The translations under genes and the position numbers were made by a program. 64,000 nucleotides of DNA, from contig CM035360.1 in the NCBI GenBank assembly GCA_020137815.1, forward strand, positions 5,518,001-5,582,000, written 5' to 3'. Each line of letters begins with the position of its first letter. Position 1 is the stretch's first letter. This DNA comes from Hormiphora californensis. Taxonomy: Eukaryota; Animalia; Ctenophora. The notes beneath the pieces were generated by a model. It was not told the DNA's origin. It searched no databases and saw only the letters and a program-made list of their open reading frames with translations. Positions 3,046 to 59,786 of the stretch are shown here, one piece after another.

Positions 3046-6000
3046 ATGGCGAGTGTAGAACAGCTGTTCTCCCTATTAGACAGTGATGGGGATGGACAGA
3101 TAACCCGTTCTGACATCCTTGCAATATGTGATAAACTTGAGCTAGAGGAAGGTGCGGAGGCGTTCCTTTCCAAACTTGGCCTCACCGATGAATACAGGTA
3201 TATATCAAGAATGAGTATATTGGTCTCTTGTTCAAAGCTCTGTGTTTACGATTCTCTGATCTAACCGTTCTACCTTCCCACCTTTTACAGGCCAATCACA
3301 ATTGATGATGTATACCACAGTGGGATTTTCGACAGTGTTGGCCAGAGCGATATCTCCCATAGCCTCGCCTCGATCTCAGACTCAAACTATGAAGCCATTT
3401 TTGATCTGCTGCTGGTGCTCCAGAAGACCACAACTAACTACCTGAGAAACAAGAGTTATGAGATGGAGAGTGATTTACAACAAGCCATATCTGAGAGGGA
3501 TAACTTTAAGAGGGAAATGATTATTTTACTTCAGGTAATTCGAGTAACGACTGATCTAACAATCGTTGCTAGGAAACGAATTAATTTTGACACTTTGGTG
3601 ATCTTGGTTACCATGGTTACCACCCGTTACCCTAGTAACACCATTCTTCCTCCTTCTCAGGAATGTGATGACAGAGAAAGGACAATATCGGAACTCAATG
3701 TCAGGGAGAAACAGTTGAAACAAGAGATTTCCAGTTTATACGAACAACTGGAACTGTGCGAACAAAGGGACAGGACAGGAACAGAGGGGAGCTTTCGATC
3801 ACGTATGGGTAATTGAGCACACCCTTCAAGCATAGATTATAGAATACTTGTCTTTCCCGCCGCCGTCTTGCTAAGAAACAAGAAATCTTCAGCAAATGGT
3901 AGCAAAAACCAAACAACTATTCAGGATCGGTTTCTAGTGTCCACACTCCCTCTGATATTCGCTTTCATTTGCCCTGGTTTAATATAGCTCGAGATCGTAA
4001 GGAAACCTCGTACTACACAAATTACACTGACTTTTTGACCGTTTTTTGTTACTGATTTCGTAACCTGTGAGCCATGATTCATGTAACCAACGTTTCCGTA
4101 ATCTATTGGGTTTTAAAATTCTGATCCAAACAAGCATCACATTTTCAACTCGATTTTAGGATCTGAGAATCAGCAGAAATCTGTGGTCAGTGGTTCCAAG
4201 TCAACGGAAAGCGTCCAATCCTCACTAAAAAGTGGGGATGAGAATAACCATGTTTGTGAAAACTGCCAAAGGTAAATAACATCTGACTGATTTGTATTGA
4301 TTACCATCTAACCACTATACCAACTCTTTCTCGCTTTTTTCTAGTACTAGAAAGCCCGTGGAGTTAGACCTCGTTGACCCTAATACCTGCTCTCTCTGAC
4401 TCAAAAATGAGCAATCCTTTCACCCTACCCCCCTCTATATCTCTCGATCTCTTTCCGTCCCTCTTTCGCTGTCTCTATCTCTCCTTCTCATTCTTCCCTA
4501 TCTTTTTATCTGTATTTCTTCATCATTGAAGAGATTTAAAAAATAAAACACATTTTTTATAAATGTCAAAAAGTTGTGTAACAAAGTAAGTGATAGATGA
4601 GTTCCTCCGTTATGTACTCTTGATAGCGTTGATTCGTTTATTTTCCACAGATATGGCCTAACACTTTGTTGGGAGTCTATTGGTCTCTTGATAAGATGGG
4701 TGATGGTAGTGTAACTGACTTGCATGTAATTGGCATTTGTAGTTAAACTTGACCATTCTTTAGCTTTATTGAATCAATCTAAGAGAGAAGAAGGGAATAG
4801 CATAGATAGGTAAAAAAACTATATGTTATTGGTTTTTATGGATTTCAATGAAAAGAAATGTTCATGAATGATATGTGACTCAGTCATTGGGATTCTGAGT
4901 TGCAGTTTACATCCACATATGTTTGGAATTTTGGATTTATACAATGAATTTGAATAGATGAAGTGAATGATTTTAAGTTGAGAACATGTACGATGATTTA
5001 AGGAATTGAAAATTTTATCGAGCGAACTAAATTTTGGGACATATGTGGATGCCCTCACTTGACACAATCAAAGATTGGTAAGATCATTGGAAAGTCAACA
5101 ATCAATAAATTAACGAACTCTAAAATCATGAACAACATTTACAGTCCTAACTAAGTTATTACCTTTGTCGAAGAGCTGGGAGATACCACTTTTTACCTGA
5201 ATAAAGATGCTACTATACCGCTTAGCCCTTGAGAATGCAACGTAGAGCTGGCCATGTGAGAAAACTGGAGAGGGTAAGTAGATTCCAACAGTGTCGAACT
5301 CCTGGCCTTGGGACTTGTTGATGGTGATGCAGTAGGACAGAATGATAGGGAATTGCAAACGTTCAAATCTGAAGGGAAAAGCAGTATCTGAGGGACATAA
5401 TTTAATGCGTGGAATGAAAGCCTCCTTGCCTATAAAATTACTGTTACCACTAACTATCCTAACCTTCAAAACATTCCTACCTAACATAACTACTTGTAAT
5501 CGAGTTCCATTGCATAGGCCATTCCTAGGATCTAAATTTCTTAATAGCATTACAGTACAACCTTGTTTGAGCTTGAGTAGGTGAGGTGGAAGTCCGCTGA
5601 TACGTAAACTGTTGAGGAACTCTGTGGTGACTTGTCGTACTTGAGTGTTCTCGTCCTCAACAACTCGATCAACACTCAAGTATTCCCTGGGTAATGTTTG
5701 TGGTTCATATCTGTCTAAAATCGAATCATTAAGTTTGTCAGCATCGTCATTCAGTGGTGTTACAATTACAGATCTAGATCGGTCAGTGTTAAAATCAGGG
5801 AATACGGAGGTTGCAATATCGTCAGTAAAATTACAGTCAGTTGGAATGTCAACTTCACCTCGAATTCCTTCAGCGCTGGTGAGGGTTCCGTCGCCCAACT
5901 CCAACAGCCAAGTCTTGAAGGAAGTCTCTGCAGGGTCCGCTCGCACGTTCTTCGTCAGGTCCAAGTGTGTCACGTATTGCCAAAGGGGCGACCTGAAAAT

Positions 6001-8391
6001 GCAGTTTTCAATGATCACAGGAGTGGATGCCCTGGGAACAATGGGGAGTGTTTGACGAAAATCACCGGCCATTAAAATCAACTTTCCACCGAACGGTACA
6101 CTGTTGTTGGTGATGTCACGGAGCAGGATGTCGATGGCCCTAAGTGCATCCAGCGGTATCATACTGGCCTCGTCTATGAATATCAAGCTGAGGGAACGAA
6201 GGTGGTCAGCTTGTCTCGAGTTAGGCCTTACTGAACACGTAGAAGTACTATTGATAGGCACGGGCAGCTTGAACAGTGAGCACAAAGTTGTCCCTGCTAT
6301 CAATAGTGTTCCTGCAATCCCTGTCCATGCAGCATTTGCAAATTTGAGTGAGTTGGCAATACAATGCATGGACAGGGTATTGGCTAAGAACGTCTTCCCG
6401 CATCCACCACTGGCATGAATGAAGTAGATGCGGGGTCTGTCAAAGGAGGGGGTTGCTCCATGGGAAAGCTCGTGGATAATTGTGTCAGCTATGAACTTTT
6501 GTTCTTCGTTCAGCTTCTCCAAATTATCCTCGGCCATGAGGGTATAGTCGTCAGTGTCATAGTCGGAAGTAGGCAGTCGCGTAATTGGGGAGGGTAAATC
6601 AAAACCAAAGTTAGTAATGGGGATACGATAAACAGACATTAAAGAGGAATGGATACTCATCAAGGCGTGTTGGTGAGATTCCTCCTCGGTAAAGCCGTTG
6701 AAGTGGATGAAATCCTCAGACATGTCGTCCTTGAAATCTCTCCAGATATCTAATGGGGATGATGTGTTACAGTTGGCTAATACAGTCGCAAATAAAAAGC
6801 GAAGCTGACTTGGTGTAGAAGTCAGTTTCGCTTCATTCATACAATCAATCCAAGTCTGATCTGACTCTAAAATACCCATAGCCCGGCAAGTGGCTTCGAA
6901 CGTGTCGTATACAACACCCTCGTGCGTCTTCAAGTCCCTGAAAGAAGTAGCACCGCGGGCTCGCAGTAAAATTAAACGAAGATAAAATCGATCTGTGTCT
7001 CTTGGTGAAACATAGTATATCCTAGGAACAATCTTTAAAATCTCACTATTACCTACACTCCTCTTTCTAACCACCCACCCTTTATTACCGGTGTATGTGT
7101 AGAAATAAGGAATCTCGGAGTAGAGATGACGGCGTGCTGAGTGGTCCTTGGCGTTGAGAGACATCCAGTGAGTCAATGTAGTGCCAGAGTCCCGCTCAAG
7201 TACGTCGTCAGGTAGTTCTCCTGTACGAAAATGTATCATATGGTTGTTTTCAAGGTGAACAGCAAGCCTCACAATAGCGTGACTTTTGGAACATAAATTG
7301 AATTCGCGAATACGCCAAACAGCCTCCATTGCAGCTATATATCGGCAGTCGACATATTCGCGAATTTCGTCTAACTGATCACGTGAACTTACCGTTTTCT
7401 CGACATATGCACTATCATAACCTTTATGTAAATACTTAAACAGATATTTAATTGAACTAATTGACATGCAAGCCTCTGTATTAATATGTGACCTATATTT
7501 TAGCAAGAGATAAGGATTGTAGGGGACAACGTACCTATTATCCAGATAATTACCATTCCTCTCGATGCGAGTTCCATCATTCCTACGCTTGTAGATGACT
7601 CTCCCAGTGTCACTGTCGAAGCTCGTACTGTCCGCAAAGTCCTTAGGGAAGCCTTTGGTACAGTTGCCTTGTTGCAAACAGCGACCTGGGGAGCACTGGT
7701 GCATCATCATTGTACTTACAATCCTATACAACTCTGGCTCTAACTCGGGATCGGGAATCTCAGCTCTAATGAATTTATCTATTTGATCTACTCTCTTCAA
7801 TTTATGCTCACCTTTAAGCCAAAGTGCTAAATGAGTGTGGGGCAAACCTCTCTTCTGGAACTCGATGACGCTAGTGATGGCCTCCTGCTCGCCTAATACA
7901 AACCTCATGTCCTTGTAGAATTCGTCTGTGTGTAGTTTAAAAGTCGCAGTAACAATGTCGGGTCGGTCATTGGGCTGAAGTTTAGGTGCCCCCTGCAAAT
8001 ACTGGTTTCCTAGGTTGTCAACTATGTCGGGGTGTGTGGGGTTGCACGTGAAAGTAATGAAAAAGTCAGGCTTAGAAAACTTAGCGGTAAGCGCCATGCT
8101 GTCTTGATACTGCTGTTGCAGCCAGCGCTTACCGCCAGTAAAACTGGAAGGTAAAATGGAGGGGATACCGGGATTGTACTCACAATCCCCATTGTTGGTA
8201 TCCTCTCGGTGCATCATCAGTCCCTCAGAAGTCTCCTTTCGGTAGTCAGGTTGATTCTTTCGTAGGTACAGGAGACGGCCCGCCTCAATCCGAACCTGTA
8301 AAATGTAATTTTAGATCCTAATGAAAAGATAATAATGAGAGATATAAATATTTTGATATTATCATGGACACGTAATTAAATTAATTGAGAG

Positions 8392-46150: not shown

Positions 46151-46408
46151 TAGTTACTGCCAAAACTTTTTATAACATAGCTGTCTGGCAGGGATCTGGT
46201 CATTGTGTTTGTGGGTCGTGTGTATTTTGATGATTTTGATGTGTTTTGTGTTTTCTGGATAATCCAATATTGTTGATTTGTTTCAAAAAGTTTTTATTTT
46301 TTTTCCCCCTTGCTCCTTGTTCGACCCTCTCTCTCCGTGCCCCACACAAATTTAAAGGAGGATCAGAACATTACAACCCCCTCCCCTGACACACACACCA
46401 TCAGTTTA

Positions 46409-47281
46409 ATGGCACGTGGGTGGAAAGTTTCAATTAACGACCTCACAAAAGCTTGTCGAGCCAAGTGGAGCGAATCAGAATGTACTGCTCGGTGTCGCCT
46501 AGCAACAGCCTATCATCTTGTATCACGACTAAAATGGGACGAACTGATATACGGACATCTGACTCTCCGTGTCCCTGGAACAGATCACTTTCTAATCAAC
46601 CCTTTTGGGATCCCCTACTCCCTGATTACTGCCCGGTCCCTCGTTAAAGTTGATCTTGATGGAACTGTTGTTGATCCAGGGTGCAGTAAATTCTCCTTCC
46701 AACGGACTGGTTATGTGATTCATTCAGCGATACACGAAGCGAGAAAGGACTTGAACGCTCTGATTCACATCCATACCAGTGAAGGTATGGCAGTGGCGAG
46801 TTCAGTAGAGAGACTCCAACCTGTCTGCCAACATAGCGTGTTCATCGAGCCTGTTTCATATCACCCCTACCGTGGTATAGTAGTGGACCAAAAGGAAAGA
46901 GCCGAGTTAGCCAGGAACTTTCCCGCCCCCAGTAAGTGTCTGGTTATGAGGAACCACGGTCTTCTGACAGGGGGAGGGACTATCGAGGAAGCATTCCTTC
47001 TCATGTTTTATCTTCATGCGGTGTGTAAAGTATACGTTGATGCTGGTTATACACACCGATCTGTACCTGAACAGTTTGTTGTTTCACCGGGTATTGTTGA
47101 GAAATCTGTACGGGATACACTCGCGAATAACTTTGCGGACGGGAGCTTTGGTTTGAAGGACTTTCAGGCGATGGCATTGGAGTTGGACAGGGAGGGAATG
47201 TGTACGGGGTACCCTTATTCGGAGGAAATTTCGAAACTTTTAGGTTGGCATGATGTTGATAATGAAACATGTGGTAGTTGA
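46409..47281 (+). CDS. Class II aldolase / adducin head-domain protein, single exon, ~290 aa
   Basis: RCRLATAYHL..LKWDELIYGHLTLRVP, HFLINPFG, GYVIHSAIH, IHIHT, MRNHG, and a C-terminal LDREGMCTGYPY resembling adducin LDNLGYRTGYPY. ATG at 46409 is in frame with the listed ORF. Confidence 0.9.
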   Translation: MARGWKVSINDLTKACRAKWSESECTARCRLATAYHLVSRLKWDELIYGHLTLRVPGTDHFLINPFGIPYSLITARSLVKVDLDGTVVDPGCSKFSFQRTGYVIHSAIHEARKDLNALIHIHTSEGMAVASSVERLQPVCQHSVFIEPVSYHPYRGIVVDQKERAELARNFPAPSKCLVMRNHGLLTGGGTIEEAFLLMFYLHAVCKVYVDAGYTHRSVPEQFVVSPGIVEKSVRDTLANNFADGSFGLKDFQAMALELDREGMCTGYPYSEEISKLLGWHDVDNETCGS

Positions 47282-47404
47282 AATTAATTGGACACATATT
47301 GTTTTGTCACTTTATATTGCCCAAACTTCATAGTGATAGTTGTGTGGCGTTTGTATTTAAATCCATCATGCTAACACCGATTTTGTCTTCCATTTTATAG
47401 CCCA

Positions 47405-48754
47405 ATGGAGCAGAATATTTATTCGCCAAACCGAGACCTGGAAATCCCTCTGAAAACAGAACCAGCAGACTATGACATCGCCACGTTATGTAACAAGTGT
47501 GAGTGCTGCGGGCAGCGGATTCCCTCACTCTCAGTCGAAATGGCCATCCAGACAGATCCCATCGTTTCAGTAGCTAAAGAAGCGTTTACCCAAACTGGAG
47601 ACACCTTCTTAGGAGCAGGACCCCACCCGATATACACCATCATCAACACCATCTTCCCTGACATGTCATCAGAACTGGTGAAGCAGGAAGAAGTGATGAC
47701 TGTTCCTGATCATGTTGCTGTTCAAGGTCATGTCTCTGATCAAGATTTAGGTCATGTTCCTGTAGTCTCTGATGTTGCTTTTTCTGATCACGTTCCTGTT
47801 GTCTCTGATCAAGATCTAGGTCATGTTCCTGTAGTCTCTGATGTTGCTTTTTCTGATCACGTTCCTGTTGTCTCTGATCAAGATCTAGGTCATGTTCCTG
47901 ATCAAGTTTCTGTAGTCTCTGGTCATGTTGCTGTTCCTGATCAAGATCATCTTCTTCGTGTTCCTATTGTGCCTGAGTTGATTCCGCCTGAATACCTGTC
48001 AGTCAAGAAGGAAGTAGTGAACTACGAGGAGGAGGACCCACAAACTGCACTTCCAATGGAGATATCTCTGCCGGGATCATCTACACTGATATCGCAGCAA
48101 CTCATTCAATTGTACGAGTGTGAGGAGTGTGAAATGACTTTTGATGGACCTAACCAACTGGTAGATCATATGAAATGGCACTCATCGGGAGAATTACAAA
48201 AGTACAAATGTGAGACGTGTGGAAAGCGATTTTGGGGTTCGAGTTCTCTCAAAAAGCACGTCCGAACGCACACCGGAGAGCGGCCCTACTCTTGTGAGGT
48301 GTGTGGAAAAACTTTTAACCAAGCTGTACACGTCAAAGTTCACTTTAGGAGGTGTCATAGCGGCGAACGGTCACACAAATGTGAGGAGTGTGGAAAAGGG
48401 TTTTTTAATGCTACTGACCTCACTAGACATGTGAGGACTCACACTAGAGATCGGCCGTATGAATGTAAGGAATGTGGAAATAAATATCCTACATCTGATA
48501 AACTAAAAGCTCATGTGCGATCTCATACCGGAGAGCGGCCCTACGAATGTAAGGTGTGCGGGAAACGATTCTTGATTTCTGGAACTTTAAAACAACACAT
48601 GACACTACACACTGGGGAACGGCCATTCAAATGTAAGGAGTGTGGAAAGAGTTTTACTCGATCTACTACACTAAATAATCATATGAGGAAGAATCATAAT
48701 GAACACCCTGTAAATAGTGATACGTCTCAAGTGGGTTGTGTACGAATGAGTTAG
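47405..48754 (+). CDS. C2H2 zinc-finger protein (7 fingers)
   Basis: Repeated CxxC-x12-HxxxH with TGERPY/F linkers. The N-terminal region has a 23-aa (69-bp) tandem repeat HVPVVSDVAFSDHVPVVSDQDLG. Confidence 0.93.
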   Translation: MEQNIYSPNRDLEIPLKTEPADYDIATLCNKCECCGQRIPSLSVEMAIQTDPIVSVAKEAFTQTGDTFLGAGPHPIYTIINTIFPDMSSELVKQEEVMTVPDHVAVQGHVSDQDLGHVPVVSDVAFSDHVPVVSDQDLGHVPVVSDVAFSDHVPVVSDQDLGHVPDQVSVVSGHVAVPDQDHLLRVPIVPELIPPEYLSVKKEVVNYEEEDPQTALPMEISLPGSSTLISQQLIQLYECEECEMTFDGPNQLVDHMKWHSSGELQKYKCETCGKRFWGSSSLKKHVRTHTGERPYSCEVCGKTFNQAVHVKVHFRRCHSGERSHKCEECGKGFFNATDLTRHVRTHTRDRPYECKECGNKYPTSDKLKAHVRSHTGERPYECKVCGKRFLISGTLKQHMTLHTGERPFKCKECGKSFTRSTTLNNHMRKNHNEHPVNSDTSQVGCVRMS

Positions 48755-48849
48755 GGTGATTTCCTTGGCAAGGAATCCTTGCGATATGAAATTAATTTTA
48801 GTTGATTGAATGTAACTTGATTGATTGTTATATAATTGTCAACTATTTA

Positions 48850-49021
48850 CAGTCGGACCCCGATTTACCGAGCCCCGATTTACCGGAACCCCGATTTACC
48901 GGGAGGATAAACTTCCCTCGATATGGGAAAATAATGGTATTTGACCCCGATATACCGGGCACCCCGATTTACCAGGCAAAACCCTTTCCCCCGAGCATCC
49001 CGGTAAATCGGGGTCTGACTG
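48850..49021. mobile_element. MITE, Tc1/mariner-type (TA TSD)
   Basis: TA|CAGTCGGACCCCGATTTACCG ... CGGTAAATCGGGGTCTGACTG|TA, with internal CCCCGATTTACCG repeats. Confidence 0.88.
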
Positions 49022-49311
49022 TATGTACATAAATGTCAAATAATGAATAAGAGATATTAAATATTTCCTTAGTTTTAACTACTAGAAACACCGATCGCAA
49101 ATCTAGGGAAAACTTCATTCCCTGTCCTTGTGCTGGCGATTATGAGACGTAGAAAACTCCTCCACCGAATCAGCAGGAAAAACACCACACAACAATTCGC
49201 ACATGCAGTATTATCCACTATCCACTATCCAGTATCCAATAACCACCCAATCTTCCCGTCAATCCTCTTAACCACGAACCATAAAATGTGTGTAAGGGGA
49301 TCTGCATTTAA

Positions 49312-49468
49312 TAGTCGGACCCCGATTTACCGGGATGCTCGGGGGAAAGGGTTTTGTCCGGTAAATCGGGGTGCCCGGTATATTGGGATCAAATACTGTT
49401 AATTTCCTATTCCGGGGAAAGATTATCCTCCCGGTAAATCGGGGTTTTAGTAAATCGGGGTCCGACTG
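49312..49468. mobile_element. Second copy of the same MITE, inverted
   Basis: Reverse-complement match to 48850-49021, ending GGGGTCCGACTG|TA. A further remnant lies at ~61985-62090. Confidence 0.85.
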
Positions 49469-49682
49469 TAGTAAGATTTCACCCCAACCGTGTTTCCATA
49501 GCAATGAAGCCTACATCTATGGCTCACATACCTTTTTTGCAATGATACCTTCGAGAACTGCTTAGTCACCCTAGCCCGTAATTACGCGACTATCTGACAC
49601 AATTCCGACAGTAGAAATAATGCCTCCAATCTCCATTTTTAGCTGAAATGATACCTGAGATTCATGGTGCAACAGTTCTCAA

Positions 49683-52600
49683 ATGAATGTAAGTGTAAGT
49701 ATATCTGGTACATAGATATATTCCTGGTATATTCTCGGATTGTCTAAGAACTTTCTATTTTCTAACTAACGGGGAAACCGGAGACGTGCGTCTAGTGGTG
49801 TGCGGACTCTAGTGCTACACAGTACACTCTAAGTCTAAAGAGGACTCTATATCTAAATTTAGATTTAGATAAAGAGTCCAAATAATTCTAAACTCTAGGA
49901 GGACTCTTTTAAATCGAAAAAGTCTACACAGGGCGGACTCTTTATCTAAAAAGTCTAAACAAAGTGGACTCTATATCTACATAAATCTAAATTAGATATA
50001 GAGTCCGCCTTTCGCTGCGAACTCGAGATTTCGGCCGTTAGGCCGGAAACGAGAGTTTGCTCTACCCCTATACTAATTTAGAAGTGTTAGGGCCGTTATT
50101 TGGGTTCGAGGTTAGGGTTAGGGTTAGTGTTAGGGTTAGGTTTTGGGTTGGGTTAGGATTTTAGACAGAGTCCGGGTTGGAGGATTTGGCGCCAAAATGT
50201 ACTAGAGGACTCTATATCTAAAAATTCTACACAGGGCGGACTCTTTATCTAAAAAGTCTACACAGGGAGGACTCTTTATCTAAACTTTTTTCAAAATCTA
50301 ACTGTAGATAAAGAGTCCGTTTTTAGATATAGAGTCCGCCTTGGATTTAGATAAAGAGTCCGTTAGCACTAGAGTCCGCCCACCGCGTCTAGTCTGCCTA
50401 GACAATTCCACACCTTCCCATGTGAGGGAAAGGGATTCGGTGTAACAAATATTTATATAGCCTGCTTGGAATGGCAGTCGTACCATTGATCCCAAACCCG
50501 TCCGTCACGCTTCTATTTTCAGAATTCTCAGCCGTCTCCAAAAGAAAGAGCGTTTCCAAAACGAAGCAATGAAATTGAAAAACTCAATGCCCAGGTAAGG
50601 GAAATATCTTTTTCAAGCTACGAAATCAGCATGTTCTTTATTTGTGTCTAACTAAAAGTCAATAAATTTCTCAAGGTGCACTATATGCTGTTGTGCAAGG
50701 ACAGAAAAGAGGTCAAAAAGCCTTCAAAAGAGGCTTTAGAGTTTGATTCGGGCAGCAGTAATTCTGACGTCTCAGGGGACGTCTCAGAGCAGCAGGATTC
50801 TGACGTCTCAGGGGACGTCTCAGAGCAGCAGGATTCTGACGTCTCAGGGGACGTCTCAGAGGACACACAGGACTCATTGCCTTTTAGCCGGGTACGTAGA
50901 GATTGAATTTGTAAAGAAATCTCTGGCAAGTGGCCACTATAAATTTAGCTAGTAGCCACAATTGTATGCAACAAAGGCTATTAGATGTTTAACTCCAAAC
51001 GACCTCGCCTATATCAGAGAATCAGGGTCAGGAGAATCAGGGTCAGGAGAATCAAACTGACTGAAGAGGAAGAATATGTACCTGTAGGGAAAACAGGACC
51101 ATTCACCTATACCAGGGAGGAAATGATCCAACTGAGGGAGGCACAAGATAAACCCCTCGCTGATCTCCCTAAGTTCGACTGTATCATGGATAAGCCCATT
51201 CTGAAGTGTGAGCCCATGAAGGTCAGGAACAGGAGTATGGATAAGAACCACCATTCTATGGGACATTCCTCCGCTGCTCCAATGATTATTGATCACGTTC
51301 TAGCGACCCCAGTGGTAGGTATTACGCTCCAGTTACAGATTGGAGGCTGGCGCCAGCCTCCAATCTGCAACTGGCGCAAGCTGGGAGAGTCCCTGTGCGC
51401 GCGAAATCTTCGTTGACTAGCAGGGTTTTCGATGTGATTTGCATCTAGAGTGGCGCACGCGGCAGTGTCAGCAGTGTCAGCAGGGGCCTGCACCATTGTA
51501 ACTAACTTCGGTCGCAAAATCTCTAACTGGACCTAGCAATTACATACATAATTATATGGGTATTTCCCCCGTGTTCTAACTCTCCCTCCCACATATCCGA
51601 AAGAAGAGTAGCAATCCCTGGTTGGCAAAGAGAGAGCAAGAAGGTAAACCTAAAAACAAGGACGCCAAAAAACTTATGCGTAGGTGGTGGAGTAGTATTT
51701 GGGGTTGGATTGTGCATTTTTTCATTCTCCCTCTTGACCCTCACACCCTCCCCTGACCATAATAGCACTAATCAAGTTCAATTAAGGATCAGTTAGTATG
51801 TGCTGTTCTTCTATGTGACGTTTAGTACCTAGGAAGCAGATTTTATAGATCCCTTATCCCCCTTTAGAAGGTATCAAAGAAGATGAGAGATCCAGACAAA
51901 AGGAGGAGCTGCTGTACAAGAGAACAAAGATGAAGGAGGAGAAATTTGGTAACATCAAGTTTATCGGAGAACTATTCAACTTGGATCTTATCGACAAGAT
52001 TGTTATCCTTAAGGTAGAGAGATGACCTGATGACCCACTTCGAGCCCCTTTCCTTTGAGTTAGGTCCTCAGTTCGTCGCTTTTGTTTTACACACCGCCTA
52101 GGGGTGAACTTCATTACCAATTATCCTGCGTAATCAATTGCCTCCCTATTTCCCAAGCCTTCCCCTAACCAACTAACTCCATGCAATGCTTTAGTACATC
52201 GACACACTGTTGAAGACCAAGAAGGATGAAGATACAGGACTAATGGAGAATATAGAAGATGAGAATATCGAATGTCTCTCTAAACTCTTCACTATAGCGG
52301 GACAGAAACTGGAGGGAGAATGCAAGTCTGGGCTTAGGAAGCGGCGGTGGGAGCAGTTCTTTGGAACCTACAGTAAACTCCAGTCAGGTACTTACATATT
52401 AGTGGTTATTATAGGCAGGATATATTATATATATGTTTAGAAATCAGAACGTAACTGACTGAACTCTATTCAACATCCCATTCGATCAACACAGCATCAC
52501 TTTTTTAGATAAGAACTACCCCTACCGTATCCGGTTCATGATCCAGGATGTAATGGATCTCCGTAGCAACGGATGGACTCCCAGGAGACCGGAGGTGAAG

Positions 52601-55600
52601 CCCCAGAAGATTGAGGATATCCACATACAGCACATGAAGGCAGAGCTGGAGCAAGAGAAAATGATGGAGGCGATCCAATCGACCGTGAAGGACCATGGCC
52701 AGGTACCCCATACCTTAAATTATATTGTTGGTTAACTTGTTACTGTAAACTGTAGTGTATATTTTGTAATAATTGTAATGACGTGGTATAGTTTTCTTCC
52801 ATGGAACAATTCCCTCACACATAATGCTCTCTTTTCGGAGCGTGTTCGTCTACACATTGCGCGTCGCGGGTGAACGAGCTAACCCGGGTGAACGAGCTAA
52901 CAATAGTGAACTTACATGCGATATACTGCATCGCGCGCATGTAATTGCACTATTGTTAGCTTGTTCACCCGGGTTTGGTACAGCCTGCGACGCGCAATGT
53001 TGAGACAAACACGTTCCGAAAATGCAGGATTATGCTCAACACACACGCCCTATCAATATACTAAATCTAACCCTTCCTCCCTACAGGATTCCTCGCAATC
53101 CTCGCAATCCTCGCAATCCTCGCAGTCCTCGCAGTCCTCTCAGTCCTCGATAAGGAGCACCAGCACCGAGAAGGTAGACAAGCCTGACAAGAAGATTCAG
53201 GACATCGACGTAAGTTGCCTTGCTCGACCGCACACATAACAAGACGTACATTGTTGAGAGTTTCATTTTACCAATCACAAATTTAGGATCAGAATTTGAT
53301 AAAACGAAACGAACTATTGAAGAAGAAGGTAAGAACAATATTACAGATCTGAAATACAAAAAAGCTGAAAAGTATCGATCAATTCATCATGTTTTTAGTA
53401 TCTTACTAAAAGTAAACGAATTCCTCAAGGTGCTTCACTATAAGCTGTTGTGCAAGAGCTTGAAAAAAGAGGTCGAAAAGCTTTCAACGGAGGCTTTAGA
53501 GTGTGATTCAGACGGTGATTCTGGCAGTAATTTGGATTTTGACGTCTCAGAGGATACACTGGACTCAGTGGTAAGTAACTGATCGTGCAGATAAAAAGCC
53601 GAAAGCAAATTATACTTCAAACTGTGAACAGCAAAATCGTTTTTAAAACTATGTTCTGAATAAATTCCTAGTTAGATTTAGAAGTTTGTATCCTGGTAGA
53701 GTGCTCGATCCGGGGATGCGGAGAGCTGAATTATTGTGACAAGTGAAACAAGGTTTTACAAAAGCCTTGTTTCACTTGTCACAATAGTTCTGAATAAATT
53801 CGAAATTTGCCTTTCTCGACCCTCTTTTCGAGAGCTTATATGTAAAATAAAATGGGTTTTAACAAAATAATGCGAAACCACAAATTTTACTTTTTTCTAC
53901 CCGGTCGATCAGTCATTTTTTAACAGGAAGACCCAAAAATTAGGAAACCGTACCGGACACCCAGTCACTTCCTCAAGCATAACATTAACAAATTATAGTG
54001 TACCGTGTGGCGTAAAAAAGACTCCCCTAGACTAACATAACTAATACCCTAGACTAAAGCTCTCCGCGACACCCGGAGGGGATTAGGGGTCCCCATTATG
54101 CCTAACATAATAATATTTGTAATAACAAGAACTTATATACCGCCCTTATTCGGCTCCCCAGTAGCAGAGCAATACATTTGACACTGAACTGCAGAATAAT
54201 CAGTAGGGGTTGCTAAGCTTAGCAATCCCTACTGATTATTCGACCCCTAATAATCAGAGCACACTAAATTTGTTTATAGTTAAAAGTATTAATTACTAGC
54301 TTATATCTTTTCAGGGGGTTTTATCCACACTTAAAGTCAATTCAACGAAACGGGACAAGGACGATAAATGGCTGTTTGGTACAGTAAAATATCCTCCACA
54401 GTTTATAGAGCCGTTCCAACAGTTACCAGAGGCATTTTACCAGAATAAAGATGTGTTTATGTTCGACGAAACACTCGACGGAAGGAGTTATCTACCTGCA
54501 CTTAAAAGGGGAGACGTCGTAAAATTTGAGCTAGTCCATGCAAAAAATGCTAAGCCAAACATGAGAACTCCGGGTGGAAAAGTAAAGCCAAGGGCGTATC
54601 AAGTAAAAATAGACGCTTTCATCGGTCAACGGACACTGAGGGAGATGCACGATTACTTTGATTCTCTGATTGACTCTCTTCAAGATAATGGGACAAGAAC
54701 GGGAGCTGTTACCACTATCATGACATGTCCAGCCCTGTGGGATTTCCTACTGAAAGCAAGAACTGATCCAGTTACTGAATTTGAAAGCTATATTCGATGC
54801 CTTTTCTCCTTTATTATGGATGTAATGCCACATATGGCAGGATTTCCGAGCCAGAAGTCACAAATCTTGGAAATGCTGTCAACTTCGAAGTTATCTAGCC
54901 GAATAACAAGTGACAAAACGAGGGGTAAAATCAATTTATGGCAAATTGAGCAGCAGATAGAAATTGATCCATCCAAATTGAAAAATTGTCTGCCATCCTT
55001 GGGCGAGGTAGTGAGGAGTTCTAACACAAAAGAAGCCAAATTTCTGCACCGTCTACTTCTAAAAACAGCTCACTTGGTAGACCTTGAAAAATGGCAAGCG
55101 TTGGAGACGATTCCTTCTATGCAAGAGATGTTTGGTGACCCCCTTGAAAAAATTGCTTATTTAAAGCCTGTGCATGCCAAAAGCCCTTACGACAGTGTGG
55201 ACCAATACCTCGACATCTATTACAGACTTCTTCGTGCAGAATGCTTTTCTAGTATTCAAAAGGGCATCAACGACTTCAACAATGGTCGGCTCGATCCGCG
55301 TGATATGAACATGTACTACCGAGTAGGAGTAGTAAACATTGACATGAACAGGTCAAACATTGTTTTCTACATGAGTTTCAAAACAGATCGTCCTGTAAAT
55401 AATTGGAATAAGTCTCGGAAACTAATGTTTGGGAACCTTCTTTGTGCATCTGCGAAAGGGGACTTTAGTGATGCGATATGGCTGACTGTTAGTGACAGGG
55501 ACCCCAGAAAGTTGGAGAAAGGCCCATTCATCGGCGTGGAATTGGTATCTTTCTCTTCTGACAACACTCTCACAGATTCTGCTTTAACTCTTTTAAAACA

Positions 55601-58600
55601 TTCTGGCAGTTTGATTATGGCTGAGAGTCCAACTTACTTTCAGTCATTTCGACACATTCTCGAAAGTCTTCGAATGAGTGAGTTGAAAAGCTTTAACCTG
55701 TGCGACGTTATATTAAAGGCAGAATCGACTGATATCCCACTGGATATCGATTCATCACTAATGCAAAAGGTCGGCTATGGCGATCTTGAAGATTCCCAAA
55801 AAGCTGCTTTTGACCATGCCTTAAAATCCCCTCTTGCAATTATTCAGGGTCCTCCGGGAACTGGAAAAACATTCATTGGAGCAAAACTGGCTCATCTTTT
55901 GTACCTTGTCAACAAAGGTACCCTAGAGTTTCTGGATCTGGATCATGATGAGGATATTTACGAGCCTCCAATTCTTGTCCTAACCTACAAAAACCATGCT
56001 CTGGATGAATTCTTGAAGCACTGTCTCGAATTTTGCTCAAAAGATGAGCTTCTGAGGATTGGTGGCCAGTCGAAGGAGAAAGAGCTCAAGGACTGTCTGA
56101 TGAGAAATAAAATGATGAGCACGGGGTATTTCCGGATTTCAAATCGAGATATACTGTTCGATATTGGCGATGAGTTTGACACCTTTCAGAAGTTACTGGA
56201 TGAGTTTAAGATGAAGTCCAAGTTCGATCTTGTGAGTTTCTGTGAATTAGTGACTCCAGAACAGTTGGATAATTTCTTTTTCAATGCAGTTAAATACAAA
56301 GGTGCACGGATAGAGTATTCTAGACTGAGAGCAGAGGATGATTTCAAATTGCAGTTTACTAAAATGCTTCGGTATCCTGACCATACGACGGGATGGTTTG
56401 TCAACATTTTCCAAACTGCGTTCTATGGGTGGCTACCCGACAAGGGCAAATTGACCGAACTCACTAAACTGTTTCACAGAACGGTGAAAGAAAGGAATAC
56501 ACCAACATGGGGCTGGGGAGATAATGGAAATGAAAACGACGTTGAAGGTGACAAAGAAGAAAATAATGAGATTGACGAGGACTATTTGAATGAGCTTGCA
56601 GCACAGAGGGAAGTTTGGGATGAAGATGATGAAGATAATGAATCTAAAGCCACACGTTTAAAGATTGAGGATATGATTTCATCGATGAAGCAAATGTCTT
56701 CTTCCATATATGAGTTCCGGCTTTCAGATTTTTCTGCTGATTTTAGCATGAAGAGTGAACTTTTAAGTGAAAAGGAACTGCATACGCTTGACGAAATTGA
56801 TCGGTTCTGCTTTATTTATGCGTCACTCACCACTGCTCTGGGTGAAGTCATTGAAAAGATGAAAAAATCTTTGGAAAATCTCAACATATACCGCTCTAAG
56901 GAGAAGGAGATTGGAATAAAAAACAAGATCAGCGTTTTGAAAAGGCAGAAGATCGTCGGTGCTACAATTGTTGGGGCATCAATCCAGTTGGGGCTTTTGC
57001 AGAAATTGAACCCGAAAATTGTGATCGTCGAAGAGTGTGCTGAGATAATGGAGCCCTGTTTGGTTGGAATTCTGACGAAAAGTGTTGAAAGACTGATTTT
57101 AATAGGAGATCACCAGCAGCTCAGGCCTCAGATCGACACCTATTATCTGAAGAAAAACTACCATCTCGATATTTCAATGATGGAAAGACTGATTAGGTCC
57201 GGTTTGCCATTTAAAACTCTTTTGAAACAGGGAAGAATGAGACCTGAGTTTTCAAGATTGCTTCTTGATATTTACCCCTTTTACCAAGACTTCCCAAATC
57301 TGGATAAAAAGAATCCTCCTCTTAACTGCTTAAAGCATTCTATGTTTTGGTGGAGTCATAGTTACCAAGAGGAAAAGGATAAAACTGTGAGAAATAACCC
57401 TGAAGCAGGAATGGCAGTATCTCTTGCTCTTTACATGATTGCAAGTGGTGTATGCAGCAAAGAAATCACAATCATCTGTGGGTATATCGGCCAGGTACAT
57501 GCAGTGAGGAAACTGTATCGCTCATTGGACGCAAAACAACTCTGCCTTGATCTGAAATCTGTTGACATTAGATCTATTGATGAGTATCAGGGGGACGAAA
57601 ACAACTATGTCATCATTTCTCTCACTCGGTCAAATCCTGAATGTAATATTGGTTTCATGAAAGAATTAGAAAGGAGGTGTGTGGCTCAGTCTCGAGCGAA
57701 ACGAGGAATGTATTTTGTTGGTAATGTGCAAACCTTTGAAAAGCATGGAACGTGGCTACCAATCATCAAGCCATTGCGAACGAGCGGTTTAATCGGAGAG
57801 AATATTTTTCTGCAGTGTTATCAGCATCCGCATACTGCTGTTTGCGCTGGGCATGTTGAGGATCTAGAAAGGGACCTCAAAGGACAGTGTAACGATCCTT
57901 CAAAAATCTCATACTACGTCCAAAATTCAAAATCCTGGTGTAGTGAGCCATGCAAACGGTTGTACAATTGTAAGCTTCCGGAACATCAATGCACAAAATT
58001 CTGTGCACCGAGGCACGATCATTCGAACTGTTTGGTTTTAATTGATTTCACTTTTGCAGACTGTGGTCACCAAACTTCTTACCACTGTTATAAGGATCCG
58101 AAATTGTTGAAATGTGCCGCAAAGCTACAAAAAAAACTCCCCAAGTGTTGCCACCTGAAAGAAGTTCAATGTCATCTGTGGAAAACCAATCCAAGTGGAA
58201 TTATGTGTAACGAAACATGTAAAGAATACTTCACCTGTCCAGAGAAGCACAAGTGTGAAACAGTTTGCGGAGTTGAGCACTCACACCAAGCCGACCGGTG
58301 CCCAGTTCAAGTTGAGTTCACAATCGATTCCTGTGGACATGTCGCTCACTTCAAAAAAGTTTGTGGGAATGTAAAACCTGTAGTAAATGACTGTCGGTTC
58401 CAATTGGAGTACGTCAGTCAGACTTGTGGACATGGTCAGAGGAGGAAATGTAGTGAAAAAGAGAGTTGTCGAAATCCGTGTGTTCGAAAAAGACAAGACT
58501 GTGGTCATCCATGCAAGCTAGACTGCTCCAAGAGTTGTTTGTCTGAAGATTGTGAGTTATGCAAGGCAGAGTATGAGAAGGCTGTCCTGGCGAAAAAAGC

Positions 58601-59786
58601 AGCGGCTAAAGAGGCGTTTGTTAAAGCAAAGAAGGAAGCAGAAAATGACGGAGTGAATGCGACTTTGGTACCAGTGGTCGACAACCAGCAGCTTCAAGAT
58701 GACCTAGAGTACAAATGTCAACAGTTTTTCAGGCACAGCGTCGCATACGAGATTGAGAGTATCTGTCAGTGCTACAAAGTAAAATGCCCAAAGAATTCCG
58801 AGGAATTTTGGAACGCTGTGGCGAATAAAACTCACGGTTCTCTGCAACAGGAGCTCTTTAAAGTTCTCAGAAATCCTATTATTCCTGGTGAAATAGTTGA
58901 TGTTGCTAGCTTAACAAGGCTCATCAAAACCGGAGATTCGTTCAACTTTTCAAAAGGTGCCATCGATGATTGTCTCCCAACAACCAATGATGGGACTATC
59001 TCACTTTTCATTGGAAATCTACTCGTTGGCAATTCTATTACGGAACATGAGGTAAAAGAACCACCCAAGGGTTATCTTAAAAAGAATAAAAAAGATTCCA
59101 TACTTGTCTCCCAGATGGATCAACCAGCAAAGTATCGAGTTTATGATCGTACCCAGTTTCACTTTCAATACCTCGTACAACTTCGTTTGAAGCCGAAGGG
59201 TGTGAAGATACACGAGACTGAGCTCATGTCCAACTTTCCCGAGGGTGAAACTCGGTACAAGATATCTGACTACGATATGAGAAATGTTAGTGATCCGACG
59301 GTAGAGCTACTTCAAAAAGCGATTTCAATTTTCGATGGAGCGTGCTCAAAAAGAACTGCATATCAGGCAAGGAACCAGAATTTAGAGGTCAAATATATTG
59401 GGAACATCTCTAACAAGAATTCTGAAGACAGATATGCTGAAAGCAAAAGTGGTGATGGAAAAGCAATTGAAATTTACGCCTTCCACGCCACTGCAAAAGA
59501 AAATATCGCAAGTATCATCAAGACTAACTTGGATCCCAACCGACCTGCAGCCCATGGTAGAGTGCATGGGGATGGCTGCTATTTTTCTGAGTACCCGGAG
59601 TTTAGTTCGGGTTATGGTTCAGAGTGTATGATAATCTTCAAACTGTTGCTATTCGATGGACAGTACACCAAAGTGAAACCAGATAGTGCAGGGTTTTGTG
59701 AGCAGCTTGTTCTGAACGACGCTGCGTTGTTTAAACCGGTTTTTGTATTGTGGTTCATCGACGATCCTCCTTCTAATTCTCCTTAG
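49683..59786 (+). CDS. ZNFX1: ZNFX1-like SF1 helicase with C-terminal PARP-like domains and an upstream eIF4G-derived N-terminus (predicted ~2300 aa)
   Basis: Large terminal exon 54315-59786: [60 protein letters not shown]1-type CGHxC repeats, then FHAT...HGDGCYFS...SSGY. Upstream exons 49683-49688, 50523-50594, 50676-50891, 51018-51318, 51868-52013, 52195-52387, 52509-52702, 53087-53209, 53287-53328 and 53430-53570 join in phase. ZNFX1 identity is high confidence; the single-transcript fusion is inferred. Confidence 0.8.
49797..50384. mobile_element. Non-autonomous TIR element with 9-bp TSD (Mutator-like) containing a TTAGGG tract
   Basis: TIRs GGTGTGCGGACTCTAGTGCTA and TAGCACTAGAGTCCGCCCACC. 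Exact 9-bp TSD GCGTCTAGT (49788-49796, 50385-50393). Many GGACTCTWTATCTA subterminal repeats. Confidence 0.88.
51868..52702 (+). CDS. Partial MIF4G domain of eIF4G type (3 exons, within the model above)
   Basis: [35 protein letters not shown] and [30 protein letters not shown] match the C-terminal half of the eIF4G middle HEAT domain (GNIKFIGEL; IRFMLQDVxDLR..W). Confidence 0.88.
52831..53021. repeat. Foldback (long inverted repeat) element in intron
   Basis: TTTTCGGAGCGTGTTCGTCT...CATTGCGCGTCGC pairs with GCGACGCGCAATG...AGACAAACACGTTCCGAAAA; the inner arms CCCGGGTGAACGAGCTAACAATAGTG / CACTATTGTTAGCTTGTTCACCCGGG also pair. Confidence 0.85.

Follow-up and report, generated by a model that had tools for sequence, protein, structure and literature searches.

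ZNFX1, ZAP and PARP12 are antiviral in vertebrates and affect translation; ZAP (PARP13) and PARP12 bind RNA, carry a C-terminal PARP domain and act on viral RNA as well as on translation. Many viruses cleave or bind eIF4G in the stretch that runs from the eIF4E-binding site through the linker into part of the HEAT1 domain. A search of the literature yielded no description of a ZNFX1-PARP or of an eIF4G-ZNFX1 protein. Here we report on a gene of the ctenophore Hormiphora californensis whose DNA combines elements of eIF4G, ZNFX1 and PARP type. It lies at 49643-59786 on the plus strand of a stretch of 64,000 nucleotides (nt), referred to as the window (G000:C11:5518001-5582000); all positions given without a contig are window positions, and all exons discussed below are on the plus strand.

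As outlined in the following, the locus is most likely a lineage-specific chimeric gene, in which a member of a family of ZNFX1-helicase/PARP genes captured a piece of an eIF4G gene from contig C4. The capture would have proceeded by duplication and rearrangement at the DNA level, accompanied by a second copy of the family's leader exon (E3). The predicted mRNA, SL?-E1-E2-E3-[E4-x4b-E5-E6-E7-E8]-E9-E10-E11 (SL, spliced leader; captured exons in brackets), would encode 2325 residues, arranged as a short N-terminus, an eIF4E-binding region with linker, the C-terminal half of MIF4G, the leader exon, a ZNFX1-type superfamily 1 (SF1) helicase with a Cys-rich region and a PARP12/ZAP-like ADP-ribosyltransferase domain.

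Results

Origin of the eIF4G-derived exons

The captured exons E4 to E8 derive from C4:8415539-8419155. Their parent is a gene on the minus strand at about C4:8415500-8419160, which was located by exon-wise tblastn and blastn, still possesses the first half of MIF4G and the MA3 domain and is, judged by its sequence, of eIF4G type. The genome searched comprised 110.69 Mb in 45 contigs. Tracing relied on exon-wise protein searches; the DNA search with the whole 5' region was dominated by two families of elements resembling miniature inverted-repeat transposable elements (MITEs), and a genome scan for the Pfam MIF4G domain omitted the window's own exons, each of which is too weak singly. The exon-wise searches revealed captured eIF4G exons nowhere in this genome beyond the window and the C4 parent. 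That the copy was made at the DNA level follows from the introns separating E5, E6 and E7, which likewise align with the parent (71% identity over 859 nt). The copied block sits between E2 and E9, a position occupied by one single intron in the paralogs.

The eIF4E-binding exon E4 (51018-51314) is 90-92% identical in nucleotides to C4:8419153-8418822. Homology to the parent sets in at 51054-51055, approximately the first base of the parental eIF4E-binding exon, and is interrupted by an in-frame deletion of 66 nt (22 codons). The eIF4E-binding-like motif YTREEMIQL pointed out in the earlier note on this DNA is indeed present in E4 (51108-51134; YTREEMI at 51108-51128). Upstream of MIF4G it provides the motif Y-x4-L-hydrophobic with Met for Leu, an assignment predicted from sequence. 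The label of a GIGYF-type motif, which the note had attached to it, is unnecessary: the same motif occurs in the eIF4G of this animal and in related sequences of ctenophores, being conserved as Y[TS][RK]EEM[IVL] in four ctenophore-like exon fragments (P0023-P0026). Together with the stretch downstream it forms a core of 44 residues (51090-51221), presumably the bipartite eIF4E-binding region, which is identical to that of the parent eIF4G and kept in the same four fragments.

The next exon, x4b (51604-51679, 76 nt, phase 0 in and 1 out, donor GTAGGT after a final C), represents the 5' part of the parental MIF4G-opening exon, with 88% nucleotide identity and 79% amino acid identity over 24 codons. 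Directly behind it a donor and intron start have been grafted (51680-51758), copied from the start of the parental intron that follows the parent's own E7 exon. This graft of 80 nt includes the phase-1 GTAGGT donor; elsewhere in the genome it matches only C4:8416514-8416587. Its reading as a dispersed repeat was rejected, as the other copy is found only in the parent gene.

The following three exons encode the Pfam MIF4G positions 86-117 (E5, 51868-52013, 146 nt), 124-173 (E6, 52195-52387, 193 nt) and 184-202 (E7, 52509-52702, 194 nt), the last of them reaching the end of the domain. In E7 the parental E7 is fused in frame to the final ~30 nt of the next parental exon, and at least one more parental exon is missing before E8. 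E8 (53087-53209, 123 nt) corresponds to the 5' part of the parental exon leading into MA3; its segment 53136-53202 is 84% identical in nucleotides to C4:8415605-8415539, and homology stops at ~53202, just before the parental MA3. Splicing would leave E8 through a new consensus donor GTAAGT in phase 0, 7 nt beyond the end of homology. A young, in-frame Ser-Ser-Gln repeat at 53087-53150 in E8 is not present in the parent gene.

Evidently, the copy does not encode a complete MIF4G (HEAT1) domain. The earlier note's half domain is confirmed as the C-terminal half, model positions 86-202 of 203, the parental exons for positions ~1-85 having been deleted, and neither MA3 (HEAT2) nor the C-terminal eIF4G domains are included. 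The inserted exons or exon groups all enter and leave in phase 0, and phase was kept by every rearrangement, namely the grafted phase-1 donor, the E7 fusion and the phase-0 donor of E8.

Two MITE-like families of ~210 nt each, which occur on many contigs, have left copies in the introns of the block. One repeat (51322-51534) is located in the intron after E4 and has many genomic copies of ~90-99% identity; the other, a palindromic MITE in the intron behind E7 (52820-53035; inverted repeats I1 and I2), has dozens of copies of 92-99% identity. One further copy is found at C11:5597897.

Exon model

The earlier note had connected ten upstream exons with the helicase exon in consistent phases and without a stop. 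The three-part architecture proposed there was confirmed at the DNA level, with AG/GT borders on all exons of that chain and correct lengths. One boundary is probably wrong: the note's 301-nt version of E4 (51018-51318) uses a weak donor, GTATTA at 51319, and the 76-nt exon x4b had been missed. According to the alignment with the C4 gene, the donor homologous to that of the parent is the GTAGGT following 51314, in phase 0. From this donor E5 is out of frame unless x4b is included, and x4b therefore restores the frame into 51868. The chain with the 301-nt exon is also open and in phase; the 12-exon chain with x4b (6978 nt, 2325 codons, no internal stop) was preferred because it uses conserved and stronger splice sites, and the 301-nt exon was set aside.

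Coding constraint on the captured exons

Comparison of E4-E8 with the parent over 303 codons gave a synonymous divergence (dS) of 0.51 and a nonsynonymous divergence (dN) of 0.11, hence a dN/dS of 0.22, with each of the six exons between 0.15 and 0.24. For a neutral copy measured against a constrained parent a value of at least 0.5 is expected. The individual ratios are 0.18 for E4 and for x4b, 0.23 for E5 (67% amino acid identity), 0.24 for E6 (75%) and 0.15 for E7 (89%). In their divergence E5 and E6 equal the introns, and yet their dN/dS is ~0.23. Within the 44-residue core the copy and the parent differ solely by silent changes. When P0023 is taken as a rough outgroup, the flanks of this core in E4 have changed more in the copy (4 changes and the deletion) than in the parent (1), with the core itself unchanged.

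The distribution of insertions and deletions (indels) follows the same pattern. The introns, at a distance K of 0.46-0.51 from the parent, show 8 indels in 302 aligned nt, the exons only 3 (66, 3 and 6 nt) in 763 aligned nt, all of them in frame, which under neutrality has a probability of ~4e-5. In a neutral simulation, in which stops were counted in in-frame codon blocks strung together, a stop-free frame persisted in 1.2% of the replicates at 0.10 changes per site and in fewer at higher rates. The eIF4G-derived exons are thus protein-coding and under purifying selection. With a dS of 0.51 the capture is younger than the split from the paralogs on contig C10 (dS ~1.07), which fits the finding that only the window copy carries eIF4G exons.

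The helicase-PARP exon and its family

The captured block precedes a gene whose main part is the single exon E11 (54315-59786, 5.47 kb, 1823 codons plus stop, acceptor ttttcag). Pfam identified the ZNFX1 domain PF25396 at 55299-55628 (residues 329-438; 59.6 bits against a cut-off of 27) and a helicase core consisting of AAA_11 (55785-57134, 86.4 bits) and AAA_12 (57165-57728, 96.5 bits), both over their cut-offs. The SF1 core motifs are intact and UPF1-like, with GDHQQLRP readable in the translation, and the best match in the PDB is ZNFX1 (9q9z, E 5.9e-97), followed by the helicases UPF1, Aquarius and SEN1. A Cys/His-rich, NFX1-like region follows the helicase, and the alignment with 9q9z extends to residue 1286; a Pfam match to zf-NF-X1 was not obtained in E11. 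A cold-shock domain at the start of E11, suggested by eye, was dropped after Pfam gave no match.

The PARP catalytic domain (PF00644, 59358-59621, residues 1682-1769) was recognized with 41.6 bits against a cut-off of 26.7 over model positions 15-101 of 199. Among solved structures this region is nearest to PARP12 and ZAP, a weak match (E ~3e-3) confined to the His/Tyr region. The His (AFHAT) and the Tyr (GCYFSE) of the catalytic triad align with PARP12; the third position lies beyond all alignments and, read by eye, would be the E or Q in FCEQLVL. A degenerate PARP-like stretch is present upstream of the domain.

Paralogs of E11 form a tandem cluster at G000:C10:519000-564200, with two intact members, 74% and 71% identical to E11, and several broken ones, which are interrupted by stops or in pieces. 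Against the two intact paralogs E11 shows a dS of ~1.07 and a dN/dS of 0.15-0.17 over its whole length. E11 is therefore a working gene under purifying selection and, by its sequence, belongs to a ctenophore family of ZNFX1-helicase/PARP genes, in which it is the dispersed copy and the others are clustered on C10. The family is multi-copy and fast-evolving, with 71-74% identity between intact paralogs and ~40% to the closest proteins from other species.

Family exons upstream of the helicase exon

The 5' parts of the paralogs map onto the window in collinear order: 49636-49696 (E1), 50504-50616 (E2), 53285-53309 (E9), 53419-53578 (E10) and 54301 onward (E11). A conserved AG acceptor, probably one for the spliced leader, marks the start of E1 (49643-49688), which ends with ATG AAT followed by gtaagt, so that six of its nucleotides (49683-49688) are coding. 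With the first exon of the C10 paralog E1 shares 87% identity across 62 nt, the homology beginning at the acceptor. E2 (50523-50594, 72 nt, phase 0-0) matches paralog L027 8672-8572 with 70% identity over 113 nt, and for E9 (53287-53328, 42 nt, phase 0-0) the identity to the third exon of L027 and L030 is 88% over 25 nt. The leader exon E10 (53430-53570, 141 nt, phase 0-0), whose counterpart precedes the big exon in every paralog, has a dN/dS of 0.31-0.36 against the C10 paralogs. In L027 the 5' order is an AG acceptor, an upstream open reading frame (uORF) with ATGAAT/gtaagt, an E2-like exon, an E9-like exon, four coiled-coil-like exons, the leader and the big exon, with 82 nt between the last two. 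From this survey of paralogs, which the earlier note had suggested, E1, E2, E9 and E10 can be assigned as conserved 5' exons of the helicase family on the basis of sequence collinearity, and the 6-nt start exon is therefore real and belongs to the helicase gene.

The paralog mapping gave no second copy of E1 or E2 within 48000-54400, and an ATG is absent from E9 and E10 in every frame. In E11 an in-frame Met is first reached at codon 49; the preceding 48 codons are conserved in the paralogs. Consequently, translation of the helicase starts upstream of E9, and the big exon needs upstream exons, as had been argued in the earlier note.

E3 (50676-50891, phase 0-0) is a diverged duplicate of E10 containing three 36-nt tandem repeats. 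The duplicated copy takes in ~40 nt of the intron upstream of E10 (direct repeats D2-D5). Between E3 and E10 the dS is 0.67 and all indels are in frame; its age is similar to that of the eIF4G capture.

Several further features of this 5' region were observed. A uORF of 12 codons (49648-49686) occupies E1, and its TGA overlaps the main ATG (49683) as ATGA; in the C10 paralog (L027 8838-8793, minus strand) the equivalent uORF encodes MAPEVHGATASK followed by a stop. From its sequence the arrangement suggests regulated re-initiation. The tandem repeats of E3 (50761-50868) are young and in frame, two of the three 36-nt units being identical. The N-termini of the C10 paralogs are built of phase-0 mini-exons (a coiled-coil-like exon and a leader exon), which are tandemly duplicated in L030. 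Intron 1 harbors a repeat-rich element (49800-50400) with 31-nt units, inverted ends at 49828-49857 and 50322-50351 and a telomere-like TTAGGG run at ~50099-50160. Intron 10 (53571-54314) measures 744 nt versus 66-82 nt in the two paralogs read, and it contains a hairpin with a perfect stem of 30 nt (53728-53790), flanked by a 15-nt direct repeat, GTTCTGAATAAATTC. Its extra length looks like an insertion and may provide an alternative 3' end.

One transcript or two

We consider a single chimeric mRNA with all exons, either constitutive or with the captured block as an alternative cassette, slightly favored by the sequence evidence, with a probability of roughly 0.55. One transcription unit is suggested because E1 and E2 are single, E9 and E10 lack an ATG, E3 lies 126 nt before E4, phase is preserved throughout, E8 possesses a donor, no internal polyadenylation signal is present and the introns are short. 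Neither AATAAA nor ATTAAA occurs in 50662-53658, and the introns other than 1 and 10 measure 77-384 nt, which favors inclusion. A helicase promoter of its own near 53200-53400, or separate polyadenylation of the eIF4G-like exons, both named in the earlier note as outcomes that would overturn its proposal, is on these grounds not favored.

Several observations weigh against a single mRNA or against the interpretation built on it. In the protein collection a near-identical, transcript-derived protein for the whole of E11 was not found, and the first 200 residues of E11 were without any match there. The chimera is read in a single genome. With half of MIF4G only, folding of the domain and binding of eIF4A are doubtful, as judged from the sequence, and the low dN/dS of E4 and E7 (dS 0.26-0.30) could partly be due to gene conversion from the parent. 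The 44-nt spliced leader of H. californensis occurs ~390 times in the genome (at most 3 mismatches) and 0 times in the reversed control; at least 56% of its mRNAs are trans-spliced and 12% of its exonic bases reside in nested intronic genes (PMC8527503), and separate mRNAs on the same strand are therefore common in this species.

The frequency of trans-splicing and of nested genes speaks for two products, a possible although rather unlikely arrangement in which the eIF4G-derived exons constitute a small 4E-BP-like gene of their own (~340-450 residues), nested in the second intron of the helicase gene. Such a gene would start at E1-E3, or by spliced-leader addition before the ATG at 50985; read-through or polyadenylation would terminate it before E11, and the helicase-PARP mRNA would skip the block from E2 (or E3) to E9 as in the paralogs. 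The details of the locus accommodate this: E4 has an alternative in-frame acceptor at 50985 that is directly followed by ATG, with which the exon would open and an independent small eIF4G-like protein could start; E2 to E9 is the paralog junction, so that skipping the captured block keeps the frame; and intron 10 contains AATAAA at 53659, 53793 and 53846, with a stop 3 codons past the E10 donor on read-through, which would yield a short isoform. Purifying selection on E4-E8 fits this arrangement equally well as a fusion. It is opposed by the absence of a polyadenylation signal between E3 and E10, by the phase-0 GTAAGT donor of E8 right after the end of homology, which would be purposeless in a terminal exon, by E3, an open and splice-competent leader copy that ties the block to E1-E2, and by the short introns.

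A relic of segmental duplication that lies in an intron, decays untranslated and is open by chance is a very improbable reading of the eIF4G-like exons. The copy is heavily rearranged, without half of MIF4G, MA3 and the N-terminus, it has received two MITEs in its introns and it was not seen in one RNA run. Of this run, which bears the species label (44 Mb), no more than a 34-nt repeat and a stretch of 50 nt matched the window, and it is itself uninformative on the locus. Against decay stand the dN/dS of 0.22 at a dS of 0.51, uniform over six exons, the in-frame exon indels next to introns full of indels, the simulated probabilities (P at most 0.012 for the absence of stops and ~4e-5 for the indel pattern) and the unchanged eIF4E-binding core. 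An assembly artefact joining eIF4G sequence to the ZNFX1 gene has nothing specific in its favor and is scarcely credible: with a dS of 0.51 and several rearrangements versus the C4 gene the block does not consist of misplaced reads, and it is flanked by family exons in paralog order within 4 kb.

An 849-nt contig of the RNA run (word depth 160) matches 51171-51220 and then diverges into parent-like sequence; it is most likely an mRNA of the parent eIF4G.

Neighborhood of the gene

Just upstream of the gene, the plus strand at 46310-48754 contains an open reading frame with a class II aldolase/adducin domain and another with multiple C2H2 zinc fingers. At 5110-8217 on the minus strand a long open reading frame with the domains Helitron_like_N, PIF1 helicase and Pif1 2B represents a Helitron transposase.

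Discussion

If all exons are joined in a single mRNA, be it constitutively or by inclusion of the block as a cassette, the eIF4G-derived module may bind eIF4E and thereby bring the helicase-PARP part to capped mRNAs or initiation complexes. The tethered enzyme might then examine or remodel the RNA and ADP-ribosylate nearby targets. As an alternative outcome, the protein could compete with eIF4G in the manner of a 4E-BP and shut down cap-dependent translation. Either activity would be consistent with an antiviral function like those of ZNFX1, ZAP and PARP12. Judged by the domains retained, the chimera could bind eIF4E, yet it could not stand in for eIF4G, as the scaffold parts are gone. In an expressed fusion, the cap-binding complex would be physically linked with an RNA helicase and ADP-ribosyltransferase of an antiviral-associated family, which suggests that in a ctenophore translation initiation may lead directly into RNA surveillance.

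The tandem expansion of the family, its broken copies and its fast divergence, all read from the genome sequence, fit an immune role. The captured segment might in addition serve as an integrated decoy, so that a viral protease or eIF4G-binding factor attacking the bait would release or activate the helicase and PARP; we regard this as unlikely. If true, it would be an animal counterpart of the integrated decoys of plant nucleotide-binding leucine-rich repeat receptors (NLRs), in the earliest-branching animal lineage. Furthermore, the locus offers a clean and datable case of gene birth by exon shuffling, in which the source, the recipient family, the breakpoints, the grafted donor and the later selection are readable in one genome.

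Comparison with known systems

TRIM5-CypA and the integrated decoys of plant NLRs, chimeric immune genes with a captured host factor that pathogens target, are likewise cases in which an expanded, fast-evolving family gained a housekeeping fragment by duplication or exon shuffling, with subsequent selection; the analogy is conceptual alone, and the chimera described here is read from DNA. ZAP and PARP12 possess the closest solved PARP domains to that of E11, at the level of a weak match, and differ in that the RNA-binding part of E11 consists of a helicase and putative NFX1-like fingers, not of CCCH fingers. With the eIF4G of the same animal the captured module has in common the Y-x4-(L/M)-hydrophobic motif, ~30 identical residues downstream of it and the last three MIF4G exons. 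In contrast to eIF4G, it retains neither the N-terminus nor the first half of MIF4G, nor MA3 and what follows; a role as competitor or tether would be more likely for it, as with the 4E-BPs among the small eIF4E-binding proteins (4E-BP, 4E-T, GIGYF2).

The nearest named relatives of E11 are proteins of Mnemiopsis leidyi. Two hypothetical proteins of this species (ACHWQZ_G017831 and G017830) and ENA predictions show the same order of helicase and PARP domains over 69-100% of E11 with 37-42% identity. Neither MIF4G (PF02854) nor another eIF4G domain was present in any of the 22 helicase-PARP protein matches. The combination for which the earlier note knew of no described protein is new only in part: ZNFX1 plus PARP already exists as predictions in Mnemiopsis and others, and, as far as these sequences indicate, only the eIF4G addition is unique among the proteins found. 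E11 shares with ZNFX1 itself the ZNFX1 domain, the UPF1-like SF1 core of AAA_11 and AAA_12 and the subsequent Cys-rich region; to this arrangement the gene adds a C-terminal PARP domain and, uniquely, a predicted N-terminal module derived from eIF4G.

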